Shown piece by piece: positions 1 to 32,600 of a stretch of 64,000 nucleotides of DNA. A program made the position numbers and the translations under genes. Position 1 is the first letter of the stretch. Every line of letters begins with the position of its first letter. The stretch comes from Podarcis muralis (taxonomy: Eukaryota), in contig NC_135667.1 of assembly GCF_964188315.1 (NCBI RefSeq), positions 16,492,001-16,556,000 on the forward strand. The letters are read 5' to 3'. The notes below the pieces were generated by a model. It searched no databases, was not told the DNA's origin, and saw only the letters and a list, made by a program, of their open reading frames with translations.

Positions 1-1425
1 CTGGCGCCTTTACGGTGAGTCCTGCCTCTAGCATCATAGGGCTGATGAAATGCGGGGAGAGAGAAGGTTTATTTAAGGCAACTCCTTCTCATCTCCTACA
101 GGGGGTTCTCTGCATTAGAGTATCCCAAAATTGTTATTATAAACTGGAAATAAATCCTCTTCATCTGTCAGATTCTCAATTTCCAAACTCTAAGGCTTTT
201 CCCCTTGTTTATGGTTATTGAAAACTTAATAAAAATAGCTTTTCAGGATTCTGTGTTGTTCTGCAACAGCAATAGAGTATCATAATATAATTTCTCAGTT
301 ATTCTGTAGCATATCTCTGCAGCCTCCAGAATGTGTCCTACCTCCATCCACTGCAAGTCATACTCTGTTTCGTCTCTCTCTGTCACAGCATGAATATCAA
401 GGCCACACCGATTATATCCACTGCCTGGCCCTTCGAGACCAGCTCAGAGAGTGCCTGTCAGGGAGTGAGGATGGCACCGTGCGCCTTTGGGGTGAGGATC
501 TGCAGCCTCCTTGCCGCCTGCTGTTTCTCTGAGAGATCATCTCCCCATATAATCCCTGCCCCGTGCTTTAAAATCAGTTGGGCAGATCTCATCTGCATGC
601 CCCATCTCTGAAGGAAGCCAAATCTGAACCCTGTCAGGGTAGGGCCTTCTCAGTGGTGGTGACCCCGCAGTCCTGAAACAGGCATCTTGGTTACTTATGT
701 TCGCTGATTTGAATATGACTCGGGCAACATCCACACCATACATTTAAAGCGCTATGATACCTTTAACAGATATAAAAAACCCTGTGAACTGTAGTTGGTC
801 AACAGTGCAGGAAACTGTAGCAATGTGAAGTCAGCACTCTGAGCAAACTGCAGTTTGCAGGATTCTCCATGACTGTTAAAAGTGGTATCATCCTGCTTTA
901 AATGTATGCTGTGGATGTAACCCATCTTTGGGTATCAATCTGTGCCTTTTAAACTTCTGTGCTCTGTTATATGGCTAATGGTCGTAAGGTTGTTTGTTTT
1001 AACTTCTGGATTATATCTTGGATTCCATATTTGTTTGCTCTTAGAAGTTTCTTGAAAAGCAGGGCGGGTGTCACTTATTTAAAGCTGATTCAGAGGATAT
1101 CTTCAGAATGTTTGGGAACGAGCCAATGCCAAAGGGATCCCACTGCTCCATTTTCTTCCAATCTCTTTAGATGATCAGTTGCTGACACCCCCCTTGGCTT
1201 GTGTTCTAGGACTGGGATGGTGTATATGCAACACAGGAAGCTGCCTATATTGAGCCCTGTGGTCCATCTAGCAACATGTTGTCTATGGTTAATGGCAGTG
1301 GCTCTGTGGGGTTTCAGGTTGGGTCCCTCCCATCCCTTACTGGAAATGATGAGGATTGAACCTGGGTCTTACTGAATGCAAACAGATTGTCTGCCACTGA
1401 GCTACAGTTGACTAGACAAACCATG

Positions 1426-1460
<35 letters not shown>

Positions 1461-4400
1461 CAGATTTACGTACTGGAGGTCAGGTTCAATCAATTGAAGT
1501 ACATAAATATGAGGTAACGTAATCATCATCAACAACATCTATATTTTTAATGTAAGAAGGCATCAAACAATAATCTTAAAGGAAAACAAACAAGAAAAGA
1601 TTAGTCAGTTATAATAAAGCAAAATTAAGTATATGACTGGATATTTTCCTGAGGTTTGTCATCCCAAAACATCATGAATAAACTCTGTTGTTCCATAGAT
1701 TAGGTGGACTGTTGTTATTTATGCATTGTCCTGTAATATGTCAGTTTAGATAATGGAGCTATTATATTCCACGTTTTATGAAACCACTCACATAAATAGT
1801 GGTCTAATTGACCACTATACTGATCTTAGCAGCAATGAAAAAGATTAATAGCCCATTTTCAAATCACCATCCAGGATTAAACCCTTTTAGATAACCTTAT
1901 GAGGTATTGCGGTTTTATCCCATTTCCCTCTGCCCCAGGGAACACCGTGCCTTCCTATCCCTCCCCATTCTTCCATTGTCCATCTATCCAGAAATTTTAA
2001 AAATAATTTACACAAGTAGAGAAAAATATGCAAACTAAGCTGCTGTTATTATCAAAGTGTTTGCAACTCCTCAAAACAACAACCCCTAATAAAAACTAGG
2101 AACCTATATCAACACGAGACAACCTCACACTTGCGATCTCATATTTTATTGAAGAAAAACCTTTGAGGCAATGGAGCCCTTACTCATTTCCGATAACCAG
2201 CATCACCACTTAACCATTGCTTCCTTTGGCCACCTTCCCCTAATGCTCCCCTCAACTCCCTTAGGAATGCAACAGGCCGCAGAACGGGAAGTGGATCCGT
2301 TGCCTGGCAACCGAGTCCGACTGGATGGTGAGTTCATTGACTCTTGGCTGCAGAAAGAAAACAGCTTAAATATCCCAAGATGTATTGAGCTGGGGTGCAG
2401 CAGTCTGGGAGGGAAGGAGGAGGTTGTTCACTGAGCCTTGCTGTTCTCGGATGTCGCTTGGGACGTCCAGAGACGTTGGCTTCCCCTTTCTTTGGAGCTC
2501 CCTGTTCTGCCCATATTTTCTGAGACTGGCCTTGGAAGCAAGGGGGGCTGCTGACATTTGCACTGGACAAGTGTTTGGTGTACTGGGTGAGCAAAACTGC
2601 TCTTGCAGAGAGCTTTTGTAATCGGCAGGTTGTGGGTTCCCTAAGGCAGCCGTCTTCCACTTTTTCAGATCTGGGACGCCCCTTTAACATGCATTTGAGG
2701 GACCCATTTATTAATCTTTCCCTTAGGTTTGCATGGTGGCTGCACCTTAGACCAGTCCCTGGCCCTAGTATGGAGGGCCCTGACTTCCCAGTTTAAGATC
2801 CCTCCCCTCAGGTGTCCAACCTTTTTGCTGTTTCTCCTTCCACAGGTGTGTGGTGGAGGCCCAGCGCTCACTCTGTGGCACCTGCGGTCCGTCACACCTA
2901 CCACGATATTCCCCGTGCCCCAGTGTCAGCAACAAGTCATGTTCTACCAGGACTTGGTGAGTCATTCTCCCTGGGGGTTGGGGGACACATAGCCTCCCGT
3001 CTGGCTGGCTTCCTCATTCCCTTGATTCCTGCATTTCTTCCCCCTGCTCCTTTGTTGTTATTCCTTCATCCAACCAGTCTTACTTCCCCTTCCTTTGCTC
3101 TTCCCTTTTGCGCCAAATTTTTTATTCTTCATAAAAATGGTTTCATTGCCACCCGCCATAGCTGTCAGCTTTCAGATTTGAAAATAAGGGATCAGAATCC
3201 TCGAAAATAAGGGACCAGCAGCCTCAGCTGTCCCGGGGACAGTCTACGGGATATCTAACAATCCGGGATAGCAGCGGGAAATGGCTCTGGAATAAGGGAA
3301 TTTCCTGCAAAAAAAGGGAAGGTTGACAGCTATTCAACCCGCCCTTTCACCCAGCACCCTGTTTCCCCGCCCTGATGATCTGTCTTCCGCAGATTCTCTC
3401 GGCTGGCCACAGCCCCACCATTAACCATTTACAGATCAGTGGGGAAGTGAAGGCTCAAATCCCTTGCATCCCACGTTGCATCCACTCTCTTTCCATCAAC
3501 GAACACTCGCCAGAGCACAAGGTAAGCTCCTGGGCGGCAGGAGGGAGGTAGGAGGGTGTCTGGCCTGCAAAGGGAGGCGGCTGGAATTCTGCTTGGAAGG
3601 GGCAGGGCTTAGCTTTGGCAAGTAGGACTGTGGACGTGGGGGAGGGGGCTGAAATAAGAATGTGCCAAGCTTCCAAGGAGCAAGGGGGGCTTGGTGAATG
3701 AGAGGTGGGTTGTCACTTGGGGTTGGACCTGCAGAAGTAGTGAATTTGGGCTTCAGTTTGTAGAAACCCAGAGGTCTGGACCGCCAAATGGCGAGTTTGT
3801 GGGACCCTCGCCCCCGGTAAATTAAAACAACTATATCCCTATAAAGTGGGAATCTCAAGGCAGCCGACAAACCAAATTTAAAACACAGCTATGAGTAAAT
3901 GGCAAATTATCTTGGGAAAAGTATGCAAAAAAAAATATATCAAACCTGAAGCGATATCTGTGGCACAGAAATGAAAACCACACTGGAGAACCATACAATA
4001 ATAAGGGGGTGGGCCATAGGCCCATTGAACCTAGGAGGTTGAACGGAGGTGTTGAAATAGCAACAGAAAGGGAGTCATATGTGCTCCATAAGAGAGGGAG
4101 TTCTCCAGTCTGGGTGCCACAACCCAGAAGGCCCTGCCCTGCATACTTGCCAGTTCTGCGTTCCTCAGCCTCCATCAGAGATCTGACTGGGGGTAGGCAG
4201 AGACATGTGGGAGAAGATGGTCTTTTACTAGGACTGGGGTGGGGGGTAGGAACATTTTGCAATCCAGGGGTCCCTTCTAAGCAACATTCGGAGGGTCATA
4301 TGCAGGGGCAGGACTAGAGACAAAAAGTTGGGGTGGGGGGCAAGGAATGTAAACCTTACCTTAGTACCCTAGGCTAGTTCCTACACGCACTCACACTCCC

Positions 4401-4889
4401 CTCCAGGCAAACGAGGCATTGTCAGAATTCCCAGCCAGGCAATAAAATAAAATAAAACAAATCACTCAGGGAAGGGTGCAAAGCCTTGGGTGAGGGCCTG
4501 GCCTGGGAAGGAGGTGTGTGACTGGAGAAGGAATGTGGCCCAGGGAGAATCCCAAGGATCAGAGACCTGGAGGACTGGATGTGGTCCCTGGCCCTGAGGT
4601 TCCCCAGCCCTGGGCTTGAGTACTTGGTTTTCTGCTGGGCAGAACAATGGTTTTGTTTCCGTGGCTGGTGATGGTGGGGAGCAAAGCAAGAGAGAAGGGG
4701 TGGGCAAGGTTACAAGCAGAGCGGGTGGGGCAGTGGGTGGGCCTTCCGCTGCCCCATACCTGATAAACCTCTTCCCTCTCATCTTCCCTTCCTCTTCGCC
4801 TTCAGGTGCTGACAGCTGCCGGAAGCAGCCACCGCATCGACGTCTTCACCAACTTTGGTTACCGGGCCTTTTCCCTCACCTTCTCTTAA
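1..4889 (+). CDS. THOC6: THO complex subunit 6 (WD40), 3' part of gene; 5' exons lie before the window
   Basis: In-phase GT-AG exons at <1-14, 389-491, 1464-1513, 2265-2327, 2846-2956, 3393-3521 and 4806-4889 (TAA). They translate to ...[21 protein letters not shown]...[68 protein letters not shown]...FYQDL/ILSAG...[30 protein letters not shown], closely matching the recalled human THOC6 C-terminal half. Confidence 0.97.
1427..1457. repeat. (CT)n microsatellite forming the polypyrimidine tract of a THOC6 acceptor
   Basis: The CT run ends 6 nt before the 1464 exon start. Confidence 0.9.
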
Positions 4890-5833
4890 GGCTCAGGCGA
4901 TTCCGTTTCCATAAACTGGTGCTGTTCAAGGAGTGCCTGGGCAGGACAGGCAGCCCCACTCGATAGGCTGCTGCGTTCAGGGATGGGTGAGCCACAGCTA
5001 GCTGGACTGTCAGTTGGGAAAAGGAGGCTCTTCACTAAGGAAAAAGAAACCCCTGGACCTGCTTGGGCATGAACTTCATGGGTTTTAAAGTTGGGGGGGG
5101 GAATGAAAGGAATTGGGAACTGTGTTTATTGTAACTAGCAACCCCCAATTCCACAGTCAGGATAAACCTTACATCACAGGCAAGAAGCTGTTAAATCTAT
5201 TTCGAGTTAAATGCATTAAAACAATTTTTTTAAGACTGAAATATGGATGCCCTCAGAATGTTTGTTGCTATGTCTTTGTCCTATCCTTCATTTGAGGAAG
5301 CATACGGAGTTCCCTTCTTGTTCTCTCAAAAATCTTGTGTAAGGTAGGTGAATCCAAGAGGCAATGGCTGACACAATGTTCAGCTTTGTGGCAGAACTTG
5401 AACTTGGGTCTCTCCAGTCCAGCACTCAAGCCTGGAGACAGGGATTCAAGGGCCCTCTAGTCAGGTGGACTACAACTCCCATCATCCTTGACCATTGGCA
5501 GTGCTGGCCTGGAGTGCTGGAAGTTTTAGTCCCACAGCATATGGAAGGCTATCGGTTCCTCATCCTGGCGAGCCATCACACCACAGTGACTCATACGGAG
5601 CTGATGGGAGAAGGTGGGCAAAAATGTCAAGGAGCAGTTCAGATGTCCTCTCTGTTTGACATCCTTCTGTGATCTTTCATCTGACTTTGCCCAAATGCTA
5701 TTCAGTTTGTTACCTCTGTGGTCATGAGGCCTGGAATCTGGAATTGTAGGAAAGCTATGGCAGAATGGCCAGTTCCATGCTGCGTGGACCAATGCTTTTC
5801 TGGATTTCTAGTCCTTCACACAGGACTCGGCCT

Positions 5834-8800
5834 TTACGCTTCGGATATCTCCACCTCCTCATACATATGCTCCTCCTGCATCCTCTTCAGCTCCTTCAGA
5901 TCTTCCCGGTGATTTTCTTTAAACTCCCGGAGAGCCGCCATCTTCTCAAACTCTCCAGTGGCACAGTGGTCCTGCCGTTCAGGATCCGGCAGAAGGTATC
6001 CCACAGGATCGCCCAGCATCGCTTCGACCTCACGGCACAGGACCTCCAAGGCCAGGGGGCCATAGGTGGAGCTGCTGGATTTGTAGCGCCTGCTGAAGAG
6101 GTTGACGGGCCGCAGGAAGTAGTGCGGGAGGTTTCTCTTTGCGAGGGTGTGGCGTAGGAGCCTCAGGAGGGCTTCCAGGGAGGACAGTAGAGTCTCCCAC
6201 TGTTCCTTCTGCGGGTAGATTTCACAGCACCACAGCAAAATGGTCTGCAAGGGGAAGAGAGGAGGGAAATGTTAGGTCTTTGTGGCTCTTACGAGGTTCA
6301 ACAGCATGGGCAGCATCATATTGCTGACTCCTTGGCTACATTTTCCTCCATTTTGACTAGGAGCAAATAATAGGGCCTTGATATCAGGTTCCAAGTGTGT
6401 GAAAGAGGCCCCTGAGGGGATGGTAAACACTGGCCTGGCGACAGATAGCACTGCTTGCATTTCGGTTATTTTACCTCACCAGTCGGTGCAGCATTTAATT
6501 AGGAGGTTCACCTTGAGATGGTAGGAAGTCAAGATTTTGCCGTACTCTGGCGTCCATTTTGTCACGTTGACAAACTTAAGCAGTCTCAAAGCTGCCGCCC
6601 TCTGCCCGCCATCAGCGTCAACGTCCTCAAGAATCACAGTCTCGGCATGGCTGAAAGAGAGCCTGGGCCCAGAGAGAGATTGGCTCCATTAGAACACAGT
6701 GCTTATGGAAAAGAAAACAGTTCCTTAGTTGGATGAACTCTTAATAGCCCTCTTGGCTCCTATTGTTACTGCAGGAGGCAGAAATGAGATGGTATTAAAA
6801 AGAAAGGTTTGATATTTCAGTGGAAGCTTAACATATCTTGCCTTAAGATAAAAGGCCTTTTTTTGGCGGAGGGAAACCCCTTTGATTAAACTTCAGAAAT
6901 AAAAATTGAGCCAAAAGGTCAACTTTTGACTACTGAAAAAGTTGCCTGTTTCTGAATGCATGCCAAGCGCTGCTTTCCCACCAGAGAGTAACCTTTTGCT
7001 CCCTCCCGGCTGCTAAGTTTGTTTACTTTTTTTTACCTCCAAAATCCTCCCTTGGCTATCAGCTCTGGTCCAACTTCCTGAACGACGGCTGCTTTCCGGA
7101 GAAAGCTTTTCTTTTCGTTGGCCAGGTCCCCATCCCACCAGTCGGAAAGGTGGGCCAGGTCTTCTCTCAGCCACTGGTTGGAGAGCTTGAAGGCTCCCTG
7201 GATGGCAGGGACCAGCTTCACTGGGACAGTTTCAGTCCCTTCAAGGAAAACCAACTGGATGGCAGGACTCTCCAAATTCAGGGCCTCCAGTGTGATGTTC
7301 TCTGCATAGGGCACAGACAAAGCATGATTGCCCCCAGGAATCAAGGGGAAGGAACAATAAAGTTACTACATTTTTCATTTCTTCAATGCCTTTCTTGAGG
7401 GTTGTGGGAATACCTGCAGCAGTGTGCAGCCTATAAATCTTAATGGTAAACCAGTCATGGCATTGCAACAGTAATAGAAACAAGCAAACAAATAATAGCA
7501 AGGCAGTCCTGTTACTCTCCCAAGAATCTAAGAGGCTAGGTGATCAGAAATATTTTTATTTAAGTATAAAGTCTCCATTATACAGAAGGATAGGTGGCAG
7601 ATCTGTGATCTGGTTACCTGCCTCCGCTCCAGAAGAAGTCAGATTCTGTCCACAGCGCTCTTCCAATGCAATTTTAAAATCTATTCATATCTGACCGGTT
7701 AATTATTAAAGGAAGGTGTTGGCAAGGACAGTGCTCACTCTGATGTTTTTACATTTGAGGGAATCTGCAATAAACATATGTCTCAAAAATAGACTCACGT
7801 CTCATCGAGTTGTCTATCTTGGGTACACGGGAACGGAAGAGTTTTTGCCGGAAAACAGGATCTAATGGTCAAGGGGGAAATTCAAGGAATGCTGCTAAGT
7901 TCAATTATATATTTGGAAATAAGCAACCATAGGCCAAATCCAACCCCCCCCTTGCAAACGGCTTCTCCCAATGGGAAAATAATTTCTACATGTTTTTGGA
8001 CTTACCATTTTGCCGGGGATGGGTGCACTCTGGGAAGGAAGGAAAGAAAAGTTCGAGAACATGAGTTAATGGAGAATTGCAAATGGCCTGACATTCAGGC
8101 TCCCAAACCCCTACTCCATTGTTTCCTAAAAAGGATTGTTCTGCTTTGAATTACATGACAAGTGGAAATTCATTATAACGGGTGCAGCTTTTCTCAGCGT
8201 GGTGATATGATATTAAGCCTGTTGAATTTCCTCCTGTTGCATAAATATAGGCTACGTGTTCAGAACAAAGGCGGCAACCTGAATTTCTTTAGGATGGCTG
8301 CCAGGTCTCCTTAGAGGAAAAGCACCTGGAAGTCCAGGTATCTGAGGAATCGGATTGTGAGGTTTACAGAATAGCATGCTATAACGGGGGGAGGGTGTGT
8401 GTGTGTCTAACTCGCAAGTTTGGGAGTTCAATTTGTCCCTCCCTCAAGCAACCCTCAGACCAAAGGAAATGTTAGCACGCCACCTGCACTGACATGGCTG
8501 TACCTGGGTCCAAAGTGATTTCTATATGTCGGTGAAAGTCCTCCAAGATTTGGACAGGGTCCAGGTGGTGGTGACTGAGGCTTTCCTAGACGAAGAGAAA
8601 ACAAAGCGGGTCACTGGATTTTGCATCCTCTTGTGTTGGAGAAAGGAAAGCTGAGCTGGGGCTAAAAAGGTAAAGGTAAAGGTACCCCTGCCCATACGGG
8701 CCAGTCTTGACAGACTCTGGGGTTGTGTGCTCATCTCACTCAAGAGGCCGGGGGCCAGCGCTGTCCGAAGACACTTCCGGGTCACGTGGCCAGCGTGACG

Positions 8801-10041
8801 AAGCTGCATCTGGCAAGCCAGCGCAGCACACGGAACGCCGTTTACCTTCCCGCTGGTAAGCAGTCCCTATTTATCTACTTGCACCCGGGGGTGCTTTCGA
8901 ACTGCTAGGCTGGCAGGCGCTGGGACTGAGCAACGGGAGCACACCCCGCCGCGGGGATTTGAACCGCCGACCTTTCGATCAGCAAGTCCTAGGCGCTGAG
9001 GCTTTTATCCACTACACCAGTGTAAAACCCACACTCCCTGGCTGTGCTCACGCCAGCATAAATCACAACCTCAGACTACACCAGCCTAACTTTAGCTAGC
9101 ATCGTTTAAGACAGTGGAATTTTTACCAGCTTCCCATAGCTTGGATTGTTCTGCCCGTCTCTAGGTGGTATCACAGTATAAAAGGTACAATACAAATAAA
9201 TCAAGTTAAACAATCAAATCAGAAAACTGACTTAAAATGTGCGCTGAACATTCAGGTATCAGAAGTTCCACCAAGTTAATTATACCTGTATGATGGTAGT
9301 TCTAGTTCATATTGATATTCAGGAGGATTTTTCTTAATTGTTTTGTACCACTTCAAAATATTTATTTTTAGTTCTCTTTTTTGTGTGTATTTGTGTGTGA
9401 TACTTTTATAACTTTCCTAAACTGCTTTAAAGACTTTTTTGAAGTATTAAGTGGTATATAAACTACTTCTTCATCACCATCATCAGAATAACAATGGTGA
9501 TGATGCTGTCGAAATCTACCTTGCACTCATCTAAGAAATCCAGGTCTTCCTCGTCGTCCTCGTCCGCCAGGCGCTCCGCTTGCCGGTGGCAGTGGACTTC
9601 CACGTACATCTCCCCGAAAGCCTCGAGGTCCACAAGGACTTTGGTGCCCCAGCGAAGCACGGGCAGCCCTTGCTCGCGGAAAATGTAGGTGGGCAGCTTC
9701 TTTTCATAGCTGCCAGGCTCCTTGGCGATGCCCCCACTTGCGAGCGCCAGCTTGGGGTTATACCTCGCGGGGATGAGGAAGTCGAAACCGTTGGAACTCC
9801 CCTCCACTTGAAGGTGCAGCCCTTCCCTGTGGCTGCCGACCGGGATGGGGTCGTTGGGGTACAGCCCGGTGCTGGATTCATAGGCCCATTTTACCATCTT
9901 CTCCACCATGCTTTTTACCACGAAGAAATTCTTCCCGACCCTCCAGCCTTTCTCCCCGGACAGGAAGACCCTGTCGGCGTAGAACTGCTGCAGGATCGCC
10001 TCTCGCTGGCCGGGAGGATCCCCCTCCCCGCTCATTGCCAT
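5834..10041 (-). CDS. Mab-21 domain / cGAS-like nucleotidyltransferase-fold protein (MAB21L3-like paralog), ~497 aa, 6 coding exons
   Basis: Exons at 10041-9520, 8585-8504, 7861-7799, 7301-7037, 6662-6512 and 6244-5834, all AG/GT bounded and phase-compatible (0,1,1,2,0). ATG is in a strong Kozak context (TCCACCATGG). Motifs: VGSHREGL...NGFDFLIP (NTase GS..xFD), LDPVQILEDF, ESPAIQL, VKLVPAI, WRLSFSHAE, DVDADGG, TSYHLKTILLWCCE..P...W and LPHYFLRPVNLF, the Mab-21 C-lobe signature. Confidence 0.92.
8666..9018 (-). mobile_element. Sauria SINE in intron 1 of the Mab-21-like gene
   Basis: tRNA-like head with B-box, Sauria core and (ACCTTT)n tail. Confidence 0.9.
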
Positions 10042-10659
10042 GGTGGATCCCTCTGAAATCCTCCTCCTGCTGCCTGCCTCTCCTCCCTTCTCAGCTTTCA
10101 CTTTCCCTTCCTGCCGAGGTCTGTTCATTCACAGAGACTTTTGCTCCTGGCTGTGTCAGAGATGGGAAGGGGGTGGGACGCAAAAACCAGCTTTTAAACT
10201 TTCCTGCAAAGTGAAAGTGAACAGAGTTTTCCCCTCCTCCTCCTCCTCTTCCCCTGATAAACATTTTACGCAGATATTATTAGCCGAGCCAAACCATAAA
10301 CTGTGCTGGGCGCTCCCACTCATTTTCCTTCCTGGGAGGGGAAATGACAAGTGGGAAGAGTTAGAAGCCACACCAGAATTTCCTGGCTGGAAGCAATTCT
10401 CTAACATAGGAACCAGGCACCATGCCAGTGGATTTTCTACCCATTTTGCTGCCTGAGGTGACAGATGAGTTGATTCTTTCCCTCTTCCCTTTCCCTGGCC
10501 CATTCCAGACTGGCAAGGGGGCAGCATGCCTGAAGGCAGCAGGCCCAGCTTAGGGGGCAGAGGGCAGGTTGTGTGGCACACAACAGCTCCGTCATCATTC
10601 TGCCCCCCCCCCCATCGCCCACGGAGGGCTGGTTCCCTCATGGCAAGATGTGAAGTCAC

Positions 10660-11507: not shown

Positions 11508-13779
11508 CTATGGGCTGTTATTCTTGGTGTGTGGAGAGCCAGTGGATTGATCCCACCCTCCAATTCCTTCTTCTTTGTCCCAGTGGAAGCCGACAGCGCT
11601 GACCAAAGGCCCTGAGCGGCCGCTGATGTAGCGCAGGATGGTGTTTGGGAACAAAGGCTCAGCGTCGAAGGTGACCCCCAAACCGGAGCCAGCCCCGTAG
11701 TCAAAGACACGGCCGAGGTTGGTGCGGAAGGCAATATACTCCACAAAGCTTCCGAAGCGGCCCAAGACTTGCACAATGCCTTCTCCAGGAAACAGCGGCA
11801 TCACAGATTGGCTCCCTGAGGGGTTTCCTTCAATCCTGGACCACAGGCCGCCGTAGCGAACCTGGATGCTGCAGTGACAAGGGATGGATTGTGGTTAGTG
11901 AAGGCTGCCACCTTCTGAGGGACAGTGTTTAACAGCTGCATCTCAGATAGAAACCAAAGGACAACCACTTTTAATTACCACCCAGGTTTCGCCACCATAT
12001 CAGGCAATTTGTATATCATCAGTTCTCAGTCAGCAGGGAAATCGCACAGGAATTTCTGGGCCCAGTTCCACTAGATGAGAGCCTGGGGCTTGCATAAGTC
12101 TGTGTGTGGCACTTTGCAAATCCTGACAACCAGGTGAATGGGTCACCTGATGTCACTGTGATCTGATGTCAGGTGACTGACAGCTCGGTGGCCCCCCGCA
12201 AGGAGGTGGGGCAGATAACTGTCCTACCCACTGGCTGGATGCAGTACCCCCTGCGCTTCAGGGAGCTATGAGAATCCTGATAATCATCTGATCTTCCAGG
12301 TGAGTTGAAACAGGTCTCCTGACATCACTGTGATATCAAGCGATTGACAAGTCAGCAGCCCCCACCTCCCTGTAAAACTTGGCTGGATCAAATTCCCCAT
12401 TCCTGCTGTTTGTGGCTTGGGTCCTCTGCCCAACCCAAATCTAGTGGCAAGAACTACTCCTCTTCCCATAAAGCCTTTGCCCTATCACCCCCCAACAACC
12501 CAAAGAACTGAGCCTGGGTCAGATATAAACACAGTGGTACCTCTGGATGCGAACGGGATCCATTCCGGAGCCCTGTTCGCATCCAGAAGCAAACACAACC
12601 CGCGTCTGTGTGCACGTGGGTTGCGATTTGCCGCTTCTGTGCATGTGTGTGATGTCATTTTGACTGTGCATGCGCGAGCAGCGAAACCTGGAAGTAACGC
12701 ACTCTGTTACTTCTGGGTCGCCGCAGCGCGCAACCCAAAAATACTTATCCTGAAGCTACTTCAACCCAAGGTATGACTGTATTTGCCAAAAGCTTCTGTC
12801 TATCCTGTGGGTTTATCCAGCATTTTTCTTCTTCTTCTGTATTTACAGATGAGGAGTTACTTGGGAGGACTGAGCCCAAGCCCATGCTATCTACTCAGAA
12901 ACTTGCGCCACTGTTTTCAGTGACATTGTGGCCCCCCAGTCACTGAAGATCCCCTCTGCTAACCTTGCTGAATCTGCCACACACCGGTAGCACCCCAAAA
13001 GACATACAAACCTCAGTATATACTTGTTGTTTGCCTGTATCCGCAGAGCTGTTATGGGGCCATCCAGCTGATTCCTGGACTGGTCAAAATGTTCCCCACT
13101 GCTGCCGCCATATTCTCCCGAGTAAGACGAGGAACCTGCCTGGGCTGGATCCACAAAGGGGGATGAGCAACAGGTTAACAAATTAAAAGGCAGGTTGATT
13201 TAATCCATTATTGACCCTTTTCTCTAAACTCAAAAGTCCCAGAAGCTACAACCTTTCACTTCATCCCCTGGATCATTTTGCTTGCCGTTTTCTGAATCTT
13301 TTCCAACCTAGCAGCAGAGGCTGTTGCTTATTTTAAGCTGTGTGCATGCTATCCCTTGGAAGCCCATTCTTTCCCTCAAAGAATTCTGGGTCCTGTAGTT
13401 TGTTAAGAAGAAGAAGAAGAGTTTGGATTTGATATCCCGCCTTTCACTCCCTTTAAGGAGTCTCAAAGCGGCTAACAATCTCCTTTCCCTTCCTCCCCCA
13501 CAACAAACACTCTGTGAGGTGAGTGGGGCTGAGAGACTTCAAAGAAGTGTGACTAGCCCAAGGTCACCCAGCAGCTGCATGTGGAGGAGTGGAGACGCAA
13601 ACCCGGTTCCCCAGATTACGAGTCTACCACTCTTAACCACTACACCACACTGGCTCTCAGGGTTGCTTGGAATTGCATTGCTGTGAGGGATAAACTACAG
13701 GGCCCAGAATTCTTTGAGGGAAAGAATTGGCTTCAAATGAGATTTTAAGCCTTAGTCCAGTCTTGCGGCCAACACACAC

Positions 13780-13810
<31 letters not shown>

Positions 13811-13946
13811 CTCTGCTCCTCCTTGCAAATTATCACAACATTTCCAGATGCAAAATGCAGTAACAGCTAGCCCCCTTTGTGACCTTACCTGGACTACCAG
13901 ACACAACATCACGGAGAAGGAGGCTCAGGAGAATGAATACTGGCAT
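11508..13946 (-). CDS. ZG16-like secreted jacalin (beta-prism) lectin, 183 aa
   Basis: Exons at 13946-13889 (signal peptide MPVFILLSLLLRDVVSGSP), 13144-13012 (SSYSGEYGGSSG...NQLDGPITALRI) and 11868-11508 (IQVRYG..W...LFPGEGIVQV...LFPNTILRYISGRSGPLVSAVGFHWD), phases 1 and 2. Minus-strand AATAAA at 11458-11463. Strongly resembles ZG16; orthology versus paralogy is not resolvable here. Confidence 0.93.
12532..12779. mobile_element. Tc1/pogo-like MITE, family B, in ZG16-like intron 2
   Basis: CAGTGGTACCTC...GGTATGACTG-TA; related to 22797-23041. Confidence 0.75.
13406..13657 (-). mobile_element. tRNA-derived SINE with L2-type tail (Squam3-like) in the ZG16-like intron
   Basis: Minus strand begins GAGAGCCAGTGTGGTGTAGTGGTTAAGAG (A-box) and ends in a (CTT)n tail. 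Confidence 0.75.
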
Positions 13947-29610: not shown

Positions 29611-32600
29611 TCAGTGTATCAGCGATTCCTGAGCTGAATGGCCTCCAGTCTCTTCAATTGGTGCTGGAAATAGAGAAGGCAAAGTTTAGCCATAAGTGTG
29701 GGGGCGGGGGGGGGGGGGCTCTGCTGTCGAGATGCTCCCAAGAAAGACTCCAGTTTAGGGTTAGATAACGGGAAAGAAGTGACTTACTGGTGAATTTCTC
29801 CCGCCGTCGGCAGCGGGCGTAGATTATGATGCCACCTATCAAAACCGCCAGAGTTAAGGCGCCCAGAGATGCTCCCACCATAAGCCACATATTGAAGTTG
29901 TCTGGGAGTTGAGGGTCTCCGCCTGCCAGAGAGAAGAGAGAGGGAAGGGTTAAAATCAGCCTGATCCGCTTCTGATCCCAGCACTTCCTCCTGGGGCTCC
30001 CCTCAGAAGAGAGTCTCTTAACAATTTGAACCAGACTTGTCTTCAACAACATCCCCTTTTCCTTCCCGCTAAACCATTTCCCACAAGGCCAGTCGCTTGA
30101 CCCACGGCTGGAAGAGGAACGAAACGGTGCCAAAAATAAAAAGTTGCAAATCTCAGCTTCGAATTCAGGCTGGGGGATGTCGCTGATCTTTTTCTTTTCA
30201 AGCCGCAGGCTTTTTGGGGACCAGATTTCAGCACACACTTATGCCAACTGGGGGGGTGCAGGAAGAAGAGAAGCAAAACAAACCCCCAAACAAAAAAAAT
30301 AATGTTTTTCAAATTCTCTTTCTATGTATATTTGAAATTTGTTCCTTCTTTCTCTGGATTCATGCCAGCTTTTATGTACCCACCATACACACACAGGCAC
30401 AGAGTCCTGCAGCCTTCAGTGTCAGTGTGGTGTAGTGGGTAGAGAATGTTAGATTAGGGCCCGGGTTCGAATCTCCATTCAGCCATAAAGCTTGCTGGGT
30501 GGAGGGGTGACACCCAGGCCCATCACTATCTTATAGCCAGAGCTGTTGTGAAGGCAATGGAAGGAAGGGCATGGAATAGAGAGGGGTTCGGTGCAGATCA
30601 CCCTTGCAGGTGGAAAGCTACCATTCCTGGTTTCCTGCCCTTAGTCCCCTTCCACCCCCCCCCCAAAAAAAAATCCCGGTTCTACTCTCACAAATGGCTT
30701 GTCGATATAAGAAGTCAACGCAGCTGGAGCAACCCAAGGTTCCCGCCCCAATGCATGGTGGGTAAGGGTAGCTGTCAGCCACTCACATGTGGTGCAAAAG
30801 TCATTCTTGTTTTGACGCTGGCAGACAGAGCAGTCCATGCATTTTTCCAGGTCTGGGCTCCAAGACTGGCCTCCGGGGCACACGGAAGCTGGGGGGGGGG
30901 GGGAGAGAGAGAAAAGGAAAATTTAGGCAGGAGCCTCTTGGCTGTGGAAGCACGGACATCTGTATCAGCCTAAAATTCCTCACAGGGTTGTGAGGATAAA
31001 ATGGGGAGAGTTACATATACCACCTTGAGCTACTTTGAGGAAAAAGTTGTTGTTGTTAGGTTGTTGTTATGGCTATTATGGCTATTATTATGGCTGGGTT
31101 TCCCAGCCACTCTGGGTGGCTTACAGCATACAGTGGTACCTCGGGTTACAGACACTTCAGGTTACAGACTCCGCTAACCCAGAAATAGTGCTTCCGGTTA
31201 AGAACTTTGCTTCAGGATGAGAGCAGAAATCGTGCTCCAGCAGCGCAGCGGCAGCAGGAGGCCCCATTAGCTAAAGTGGTGCTTCAGGTTAAGAACAGTT
31301 TCAGGTTAAGAACGGACCTCTGGAACAAATTAAGTACTTAACCCGAGGTACCACTGTATATAAAAACATAATGAAACATCAAACTTGAAAAACATGAACG
31401 TTGCTAGTGTATACAGGTGTTTTGGTAAGTCACATCCAGCAGGTTTATACCACTGTAAGAGTCATGACTCCCCCCAGTGCAAGAATCCTGGGAACTGTAG
31501 TTTACCCACATACAGAGAGCTACAATTCCAAACACCCTTAACTATGGTTCCCAGCAAAGGTGCCAACTTGAATAAAATATGGGGGGGGGGGGGCAGGTAA
31601 GCCCTGCCCCACATAATTGATCACATGATGTGACACACACTATTTGAATGGAAATGCCCATCAACTTTCGGGGGGGGGGAATGGCCCCCTCAAATATTTT
31701 AGGGGGGTGGCGAAGGACCTCAGCCCCTAGGAGTTGGCTCTATGTTCCGTGGGGGGGAAGCCATGGGTGTTAAAGTGGTATGAAAGTGCTTTAAATGGAT
31801 GGTGTGGATGTGACATCCGTGTTGGCAGGCTCTGCTGCCCTCCCAAACCAGCTTGGAAAGGCTATAATCCAGGGAGAAATGAAGGGGTTTGGGGGGGGGC
31901 GGGATTCGCAAACAGGCTTCTGTGGAAGCCAGGCCCGCTGGGCTCATTGCAGCCTCTGGACTCCAGAGCAAATCGCGGCTTAGGAGGAGCGCGCTGTAAA
32001 AGGAGCCGGGATGGGAGGGAGAGAAAGACGATTAGGAGGAAGCTGAATGAATGAAAGCGACCAAGCGACAAGTCAGAACATGAAGACGCTTAACAGCTGA
32101 ATGAAAAAGAAGAAAAAGATCCATACACGAGGCTCTCCTGTCCCTCCCTCCCTCCCATGACATGAGGGTCTATTTCCAGAGGGGTAACGTCAGTAGGGAA
32201 AGGGGTGTCGTGTTTCGCCCCGAAACCTGAACCAGACCCGAGCAGCAGCAGGAGAGCATCGGGGGGTCAAGACTGAGAGCATCACGTGGCGAAGTTGTGG
32301 CGCGGGGGAGGGCAAGGACCCCCCTCCCCCCTTTCAAGTGACTTCATTGATAAAATATGCCCCGTGCAAGCGAGCAAACAGATGGCGCCGGGCCCAGAAG
32401 TGGAACGAAAGAGAAGGGGGGGCGGAGCCGGTGGGTGAGTCACCATGTGGGTCGCCTGATGCAGCGGACGTCAGATTTCGCTCTCCCCACCCCCCAGGCC
32501 CCCAATTGTCCGCTGCCCGGATCCTGCTCTCCTGTCCCAGTTTTCTCACTTGTGACTCGCGGGGAAAAAGGAAACTTTCACCCGCAAGGCAGCCAATGGG

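Follow-up and report, generated by a model that had tools for sequence, protein, structure and literature searches.

Catalysis by cGAS needs all three of its active-site acids, and the vertebrate complement is usually given as cGAS, MB21D2 and a few inactive Mab-21 paralogues. For the wider class of cGAS-like receptors (cGLRs), the survey of Li et al. (2023; PMC9980059) describes several invertebrate members as proven enzymes and takes MAB21L3 to be without a functional active site. Its vertebrate set was built from the cGAS, Mab21L1-3 and MB21D2 clusters, with only two cGLRs in turtles, like alligator and duck, and the cGLR motif is h[QT]GS X8-20 [DE]h[DE]h X50-90 h[DE]h. Here a Mab-21/cGAS-fold gene of the lizard Podarcis muralis was analysed in a stretch of 64,000 nucleotides (the window; RefSeq assembly GCF_964188315.1, contig NC_135667.1, forward-strand positions 16,492,001 to 16,556,000), in whose coordinates all positions are given. 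The gene lies on the minus strand, with its ATG at 10041 and its TAA at 5836-5834, and has a significant match to both Mab-21 domains. It is already annotated but uncharacterised, and a literature search returned no description of the reptile gene. The favoured reading, to which a probability of about 0.6 is given, is that it encodes a squamate pseudoenzyme from a reptile-restricted cGLR-like lineage, in which the nucleotide pocket was kept and catalysis was lost, and which is probably interferon-regulated and acts by binding rather than by synthesis.

Catalytic positions were assigned by comparison with cGAS. A profile alignment to mouse cGAS placed sVkLvPa on ISVDIILA and GS...ndfDf on GSYYEHVKISAPNEFDV, the N-terminal stretch scoring weakly. 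Invertebrate cGLR-like outgroups had [DE]h[D] and D in the same alignment columns as G85/D87 and K259. Together with the superposition of the predicted fold on cGAS, these alignments identify G85 and K259 as the first and third metal-ligand positions. G69-S70 is encoded at 9837-9832, and G85 follows 14 residues on. These residues, D87, the Lys codon at 7216-7218, the loop that stands in the place of the zinc thumb, and the LSFSHAE and SYHLK motifs all lie where a preliminary description of this DNA had put them.

GS and D87 were invariant in the family alignment, and four of the five invertebrate outgroups carried [DE]h[D] plus D at the third position. The third acid was lost in all 21 squamates sampled: Lys was present in 17 (AAG), Asn in Hemicordylus and Elgaria (AAC/AAT) and Arg in Anolis. 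At the first position Asp was found in 11 squamates, Gly in eight (including Podarcis and Lacerta; Zootoca keeps Asp) and Asn in two, the Asp codon being GAT or GAC in Zootoca, Rhineura, snakes and turtles. On the tree at least eight changes were needed for the first acid, and six for the third. Cryptodire turtles had D-[FY]-D in both paralogues (Natator, Dermochelys, Gopherus and Mauremys-type A; Chrysemys and Dermochelys B; both Pelodiscus copies), with D at the third position (turtle codon GAT) or E in one Pelodiscus copy. In the pleurodire Pelusios both copies have lost acids, with T and Q in one and T and N in the second. Since most turtle orthologues carry the whole triad, the squamate state is a derived loss. 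By these alignments the complete GS...[D]h[D]...[D/E] triad is the ancestral and cryptodire-turtle state, and the simplest history would be that the third acid disappeared on the squamate stem and that the first acid, by then unconstrained, was lost several times afterwards.

The residues that correspond to nucleotide contacts of cGAS were almost invariant: K314 (ELIAK), W318-R319 and two Ser (S321/S323) of WRLSFS, K348 (LRLLKF) and Y366-H367 (SYHLK). With these pocket motifs kept and two acids lost, the protein has the looks of the pseudo-nucleotidyltransferase that had been proposed. It might still be an enzyme, with K259 in place of one metal or a single metal on D87 and a nucleotide signal made by the remodelled site. 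The invariant GS and D87, the retained phosphate- and base-contacting motifs ELIAK, WRLSFS, LRLLKF and SYHLK, and the basic third position (K in 17 of 21 squamates, R in Anolis) would suit such an enzyme. Asn at the Lys position in Hemicordylus and Elgaria would not, nor would the established requirement of cGAS for all three acids; a first acid that varies between D, G and N, with eight changes on the tree, is unexpected of a catalytic residue. The variable first acid and the N or R at the third position point to a released or dead catalytic centre and not to a re-engineered one. Continued catalysis is accordingly improbable, and the substitution of Lys for a metal, which the preliminary description had allowed, appears unlikely on the residues found across squamates.

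Comparison with the cGLR motif bears on the same question, since the window protein departs from it in four respects (Li et al., 2023; PMC9980059). The sequence before the first acids is P-V-G-S, with V where Q or T is required; G85-F-D87-F lacks the first acid, at an acceptable spacing of 14 residues; and at the third acid V-K259-L takes the place of h[DE]h, 169 residues beyond the DF motif where the motif has 50-90. The long spacing is shared by the cryptodire turtle copies, in which the third motif reads V/I-D-L (I-E-L in one Pelodiscus copy). None of the five family accessions tried occurred in the searched part of the supplements of Li et al. (2023; PMC9980059), and the family may be missing from those parts of the catalogue because the 169-residue spacing fails the motif filter.

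Membership of the fold was examined with profiles and with predicted structure. Pfam searches on a family protein 98% identical to the window protein (P0021) gave PF20266 (Mab-21_C) at 60.6 bits and PF03281 (Mab-21) at 28.5 bits, the cut-off being 24.1 for both; the PF03281 match spanned profile positions 77-196 only, which is the C-terminal two thirds of the nucleotidyltransferase domain. Exon 7 of the window alone matched PF20266 at 3.4e-11. Exon 1 alone gave nothing meaningful in Pfam and PDB searches, the N-terminal lobe being too divergent to be recognised from a single sequence. The AlphaFold2 model, built with 26 orthologues, had a predicted template modelling (TM) score of 0.80 and disorder confined to the extreme N-terminus, residues 103-105 and an acidic stretch at 143-179. 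It superposed on cGAS across residues 1-450. Its best Foldseek matches in the PDB were mouse cGAS ternary complexes (TM score 0.70-0.75 by target, E about 1e-13). The Mab-21/cGAS-like assignment of the preliminary description was thus recovered.

In Swiss-Prot the top Foldseek matches were coral cGLR1 (19% identity), MAB21L3 (16-17% for the mouse, human and zebrafish proteins), cGAS (17-18%) and MAB21L4 (17%), followed by MB21D2 and MID49/51. The family profile scored 2e-17 against 8gjy (cGLR1), 4e-14 against mouse cGAS, 3e-12 against MAB21L1, 1e-7 against MB21D2 and 7e-6 against MID51. TMEM102, suggested by language-model features, was outside the top 30 Swiss-Prot structural matches and was dropped. 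To the common fold the reptile family adds an invariant LSDWW motif, an insert of about 80 residues between the second and third acid positions that ends in a disordered acidic run, and a conserved, acidic, helical C-terminal tail (residues about 426-505). The tail was confidently predicted, with a per-residue confidence (pLDDT) of 85-96 at residues 431-450 and 471-500 and a dip to about 70 at 451-470.

With exon 1 as query, an exhaustive HMMER search matched 13 of 1.84 billion representatives, and all the named ones come from squamates or turtles. A collection of 5.8 billion proteins, searched with the full-length sequence, the profile and the core region, returned orthologues from lacertids, an amphisbaenian, a cordylid, agamids, an anole, an anguid, a monitor, geckos, many snakes and turtles. 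The only non-reptile matches in this collection were invertebrate cGLR-like proteins (coral, crinoid and unnamed) at 1e-4 to 1e-7, and none of the vertebrate MAB21L1-4, cGAS or MB21D2 proteins passed E 1e-3. No mammalian relative was found in the protein database searches, and the supposition that the gene is lineage-restricted was borne out. In a maximum-likelihood tree of the reptile family and invertebrate outgroups, the reptile clade was supported at 100/99 and the turtle A and B paralogues grouped together (83/85); the outgroup branches are very long, and the root within the reptile clade is unsettled.

The seven-exon structure was common to seven other squamates and two sea turtles, with exon lengths of about 500, 82, 24-27, 63, 265-268, 151 and about 415 nt. 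Exons 2 (82 nt) and 4 (63 nt) were constant in all nine loci, and exon 3 had 24 nt in squamates against 27 in turtles. A THOC6-type WD40 gene stands tail-to-tail with the Mab-21 gene in Lacerta, Zootoca, Rhineura, Hemicordylus, Elgaria, Python and Crotalus, and five of these (Lacerta, Zootoca, Rhineura, Hemicordylus, Python) have a jacalin-domain gene ahead of the Mab-21 gene. HCFC1R1 (Pfam HPIP) follows in Hemicordylus. Turtle synteny was taken from the soft-shelled turtle Pelodiscus sinensis (L010 418-18039), where two tandem family copies lie ahead of the same WD40 gene; around the Natator and Dermochelys loci no neighbour lies within 10 kb. The synteny check suggested at the outset therefore gave a THOC6 neighbour common to the window, seven other squamates and Pelodiscus. 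Since birds and crocodilians, and not squamates, are the nearer relatives of turtles, the gene was probably present in the common ancestor of living reptiles; that archosaur protein sets lack it would then indicate loss.

Automatic names for the family are inconsistent ('uncharacterized', 'mab-21-like 3', 'C2orf54-like', 'MAB21L1'), and some of them would make the window gene the lizard orthologue of MAB21L3 or MAB21L4. Varanus komodoensis has both a bona fide MAB21L3 (XP_044308377.1, given in the supplement of Li et al., 2023; PMC9980059) and a separate family gene (XP_044303716.1, 'uncharacterized LOC123032121'), in which LSDWW is present and the MAB21L3 motif HWHLSFSRAE is absent. Identity to MAB21L3 and MAB21L4 is no better than to cGAS, neither protein passed E 1e-3 in the three kinds of search, and the gene lies at the THOC6/HCFC1R1 locus, which is taken here, from the human map, not to be the MAB21L3 neighbourhood. 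Identity with MAB21L3 is contradicted by the separate Varanus gene, the equally low identities and the locus, and orthology to either paralogue is very improbable; the names 'mab-21-like 3', 'C2orf54-like' and 'MAB21L1' are misleading for these proteins. As a statement of kinship, the label 'MAB21L3-like' in the preliminary description likewise fails, the identity being no higher than that to cGAS or cGLR1. A sister relationship to MAB21L3 is possible, given a by-eye resemblance in the loop and in TS[FY]HL.

The gene is transcribed, correctly spliced and under purifying selection. All six splice joints were found in RNA-seq contigs (three runs from three studies), with CT..AC ends that correspond to GT..AG on the gene strand, and one contig of 1946 nt passes through all seven exons, from 5600 to 10087. 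A fourth run held a few raw reads with both micro-exon joints. The assemblies of the three studies contain 0.29-0.42 of the words sampled in the 4.2-kb gene interval, of which the coding sequence makes up about 36%; a share of about one third is the pattern expected of spliced mRNA. The ratio of nonsynonymous to synonymous substitution (dN/dS; pairwise Nei-Gojobori) was 0.31-0.37 within lacertids, 0.25 for Python against Crotalus, and 0.22-0.28 for Podarcis against Rhineura, Hemicordylus, Elgaria or Python. Values were alike in all six protein regions, and the bootstrap 95% intervals were all well below 1. The protein is thus moderately fast-evolving but constrained. A decaying gene, still transcribed with its function gone, could account for the lost catalytic residues and for some RNA contigs that contain introns. 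It is hardly credible beside an intact seven-exon reading frame in all seven squamate loci with extracted coding sequence, full-length protein models for most of the 21 squamates, fully spliced transcripts and these dN/dS intervals. Findings named in the preliminary description as ones that would speak against it (a reciprocal best hit to MAB21L3, no transcript, or dN/dS near 1) were not made.

A putative regulatory element was found in the 5' leader. An element like the interferon-stimulated response element (ISRE) lies upstream of the ATG; it fits the core GAAANNGAAA[CG] and is close to the classical ISG54 element. The block recurs in Lacerta, Zootoca, Rhineura (GGGAAAGTGAAACTT), Hemicordylus (a variant) and Elgaria, where it precedes the ATG by 57-74 nt, and the sea turtle Natator has a similar element, GGAAACTGAAAGC, 88 nt upstream. 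The conserved promoter element suggests induction by interferon or interferon regulatory factors (IRFs), and hence an innate-immune regulatory role; from the positional conservation of the motif, the squamate gene is probably under interferon regulation.

The pattern of regulation and selection also bears on a different account, in which the gene encodes a non-immune structural or developmental protein like MAB21L1/2/3 that binds no nucleotide, the ISRE-like element being coincidental. Non-immune roles are common among inactive Mab-21 paralogues, the window protein is acidic, and its D-x-D-G-G-x-R loop and TS[FY]HL resemble Varanus MAB21L3 by eye. Proteins of the MAB21L1/2 type are very conserved, and dN/dS of 0.22-0.37 is far above the level expected of them; moreover, the position of the ISRE-like element is conserved across lizards, and turtle orthologues have an enzyme-type triad. 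A non-immune role is unlikely, with appreciable weight left to it.

The window gene is the squamate orthologue of a Mab-21/cGAS-fold gene confined to squamates and turtles, sited between a jacalin-domain gene and THOC6. Squamates have lost the third metal-binding acid, now Lys, after which the first acid drifted, to Gly in Podarcis. On the pseudoenzyme reading, two-metal nucleotidyl transfer would no longer be possible in the squamate protein. The retained pocket (K314, W318-R319, S321/S323, K348, Y366-H367) would bind a nucleotide or other ligand without turnover, and the invariant D87 might be salt-bridged to K259. The acidic helical tail and the acidic insert could serve protein contacts or autoinhibition. 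The role would be an innate-immune one, as sensor, scaffold or decoy, rather than a developmental one.

Several observations weigh against this reading. K259 is fairly well conserved (17 of 21), which leaves room for a specific role of the Lys, and conservation of the pocket residues may reflect folding alone. With its isoelectric point of 5.5 the protein is acidic, unlike the nucleic-acid-binding cGAS, so that a nucleic-acid ligand and binding of the cGAS type are doubtful. Snakes have a degenerate version of the ISRE-like element, and Dermochelys has none in the 600 nt examined. The ISRE pattern, a motif match only, is not enriched across the window (5 matches against 2.1 expected).

The turtle orthologues are candidate active enzymes. 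A wider proposal is tentative, and rather doubtful as a whole: the squamate-turtle clade would be an unrecognised vertebrate cGLR lineage, already present in the common ancestor of living reptiles and missing in birds, crocodilians and mammals, in which the turtle paralogues are active ligand-triggered signalling enzymes and the squamate protein is an interferon-inducible, catalytically dead sensor, scaffold or decoy that binds a ligand or product. The clade adds a reptile-only branch to the vertebrate Mab-21 set; it is not categorically new, inactive Mab-21 paralogues being familiar. It offers a natural comparison between an intact-triad turtle form, in tandem copies, and a triad-less form fixed across squamates and still under selection. 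This would be a tractable system for the function of a cGAS-fold protein after catalysis is gone, and bears on additional cGLR signals in non-mammalian vertebrates.

Table 1. Positions in the window of the Mab-21/cGAS-fold gene, its catalytic-site codons, upstream elements and flanking genes.
Feature	Position	Strand	Remarks
G85 codon GGT	9787..9789	-	first catalytic-acid position (cGAS E225)
D87 codon GAC	9781..9783	-	second catalytic acid; invariant across the whole reptile family
K259 codon AAG	7216..7218	-	third catalytic-acid position (cGAS D319), in VPVKLVP
Coding exon 1	9520..10041	-	522 nt, residues 1-174; N-terminal helices, G69-S70, G85-F86-D87, insert ending in acidic stretch
Coding exon 2	8504..8585	-	82 nt; joints 8584|9519 (to exon 1) and 8029|8504 (to exon 3) seen in RNA runs X1, X5, X6
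Coding exon 3	8006..8029	-	24-nt micro-exon; joints in runs X1, X5, X6 and in raw reads of X23
Coding exon 4	7799..7861	-	63 nt, DPVFRQKLFRSRVPKIDNSMR; joints 7301|7799 and 7861|8006; present in Lacerta XP_033026840
Coding exon 5	7037..7301	-	265 nt; K259 strand, LSDWW motif, K314, W318/R319
Coding exon 6	6512..6662	-	151 nt; LSFSHAE, V-D-A-D-G-G loop (6622-6605), LRLLKF (K348), SYHLK (6526-6512)
Coding exon 7	5834..6244	-	411 nt including TAA 5836-5834; rest of Mab-21_C and conserved acidic helical tail (residues about 426-505)
5' leader	10042..10128	-	in-frame upstream ATG 10128-10126 adds 29 residues (MNRPRQEGKVKAEKGG...); used in newer RefSeq model
ISRE-like element GGGAAAGTGAAAGCT	10093..10107	-	64 nt upstream of ATG
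Second IRF-type element TTCACTTTCACTTTG	10207..10221	-	complement with two tandem AAGTGA hexamers; three lacertid genera only
THOC6-type WD40 gene	1-4889	+	convergent with Mab-21 gene; runs off window start
Jacalin-domain (ZG16-like) gene	11510-13946	-	immediately upstream of Mab-21 gene

The exon model was guided by a Lacerta agilis protein, obtained from the exhaustive HMMER search with exon 1, and by the RNA joints. The intact reading frame between 10041 and 5834 that had been described was upheld; the six exons and approximately 497 residues given for it were replaced by seven coding exons and 505 residues, every intron being GT-AG. A six-exon model of 484 residues is in frame but lacks the 63-nt exon at 7861-7799, and was ruled out by the Lacerta protein and the RNA joints. 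The window protein is 100% identical to residues 30-534 of the newer RefSeq model for Podarcis muralis (XP_028560825.2, 'uncharacterized protein LOC114583672'), which has 534 residues and starts at the in-frame upstream ATG at 10128. Of the two start codons, that at 10041-10039 stands in a strong Kozak context (ccaccATGg) and that at 10128-10126 in a weak one (T at -3); an RNA contig extends to 10169. The 29-residue extension is not found in the other aligned squamate protein models and is encoded by the ISRE-containing leader. Exon 1 is covered by an RNA contig over 9519-10087 and has 94% identity to Lacerta exon 1. LSFSHAE straddles the exon 5/6 junction, and EDVDADGG is encoded at about 6605-6628. 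The 3' untranslated region reaches at least 5600, with RNA contigs over 5600-6246.

Some transcript features differed from the assembly or lay outside the exons. After 5944, three extra bases (CTC) were present in all four RNA runs, which gives one added Glu (GEFEEKMAAL); the same Glu occurs in older Podarcis muralis, P. lilfordi and Lacerta proteins, and represents a harmless in-frame indel, either a polymorphism or a small assembly difference. RNA contigs also run through introns 5 and 2 (6635-7065, 7998-8424), from unspliced precursor, retained introns or DNA carry-over. Intron 1 contains a tRNA-derived repeat like a short interspersed element (8583-9053) with a ggttcaaatccc box, where RNA word depth reached tens of thousands with many loose ends; this indicates that copies are transcribed genome-wide and that the repeat dominates read mapping to the interval.

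Three further observations concern the turtle copies and the neighbourhood. In Pelodiscus the two copies are of B type and each has an acidic triad, one with D and one with E at the third position, and the Pelusios castaneus models P0005 and P0017 fuse A and B copies into one protein of 1038-1177 residues. At 29654-30238 on the minus strand of the window, an open reading frame has a weak match to the TNFR domain of TNFRSF12A (Fn14), at 23.7 bits under a cut-off of 24.9. Human TNFRSF12A adjoins HCFC1R1; between the Fn14-like frame and the THOC6/HCFC1R1 side of the window lie the Mab-21 gene, the jacalin gene and further sequence.

Among known systems, cGAS shares with the lizard protein the bilobal Mab-21 nucleotidyltransferase fold (profile against mouse cGAS 4e-14), GS, the second acid (D87), WRLSFSH, the Lys of (Y)LVPK/ELIAK, the Lys of LKLMKY/LRLLKF and SYH[VL]K. 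The lizard protein differs in having G85 and K259 for the first and third metal acids, at 17-18% identity. Where cGAS has the zinc thumb H-x5-CC-x6-C, the profile alignment shows a shorter loop, lkd-vdaDgGqR, with no Cys or His ligands, in agreement with the missing zinc thumb noted from the DNA. The lizard protein also has about 80 extra residues, an acidic C-terminal tail, an isoelectric point of 5.5 rather than a basic one, and another locus.

The cGLR1 of the coral Stylophora pistillata gave the best PDB profile match (8gjy) and the best Swiss-Prot fold match (A0A2B4RP11, TM score 0.70 by hit). It likewise has a short loop for the zinc thumb, and its SYHLKT is identical to that of the lizard. 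Invertebrate cGLRs differ in their full [DE]h[DE]...[DE] triad, whereas the lizard protein is without two of the three acids and carries the insert and tail. MAB21L3 is also without the zinc thumb, was matched by Foldseek at 1.5e-12, and in Varanus has a loop D-E-D-G-G-C-R and a TSFHL that resemble the lizard by eye; it lacks LSDWW, the acidic insert and the C-terminal tail, and has about 360-430 residues against 505. MAB21L1, MB21D2 and MID49-51 share the fold and the Mab-21_C domain, and Foldseek aligned MB21D2 over the full length of the model (1-506), including the C-terminal tail. Their profile scores are more distant than those of cGAS and cGLR1, their loci and lengths are different, and no orthology is indicated.

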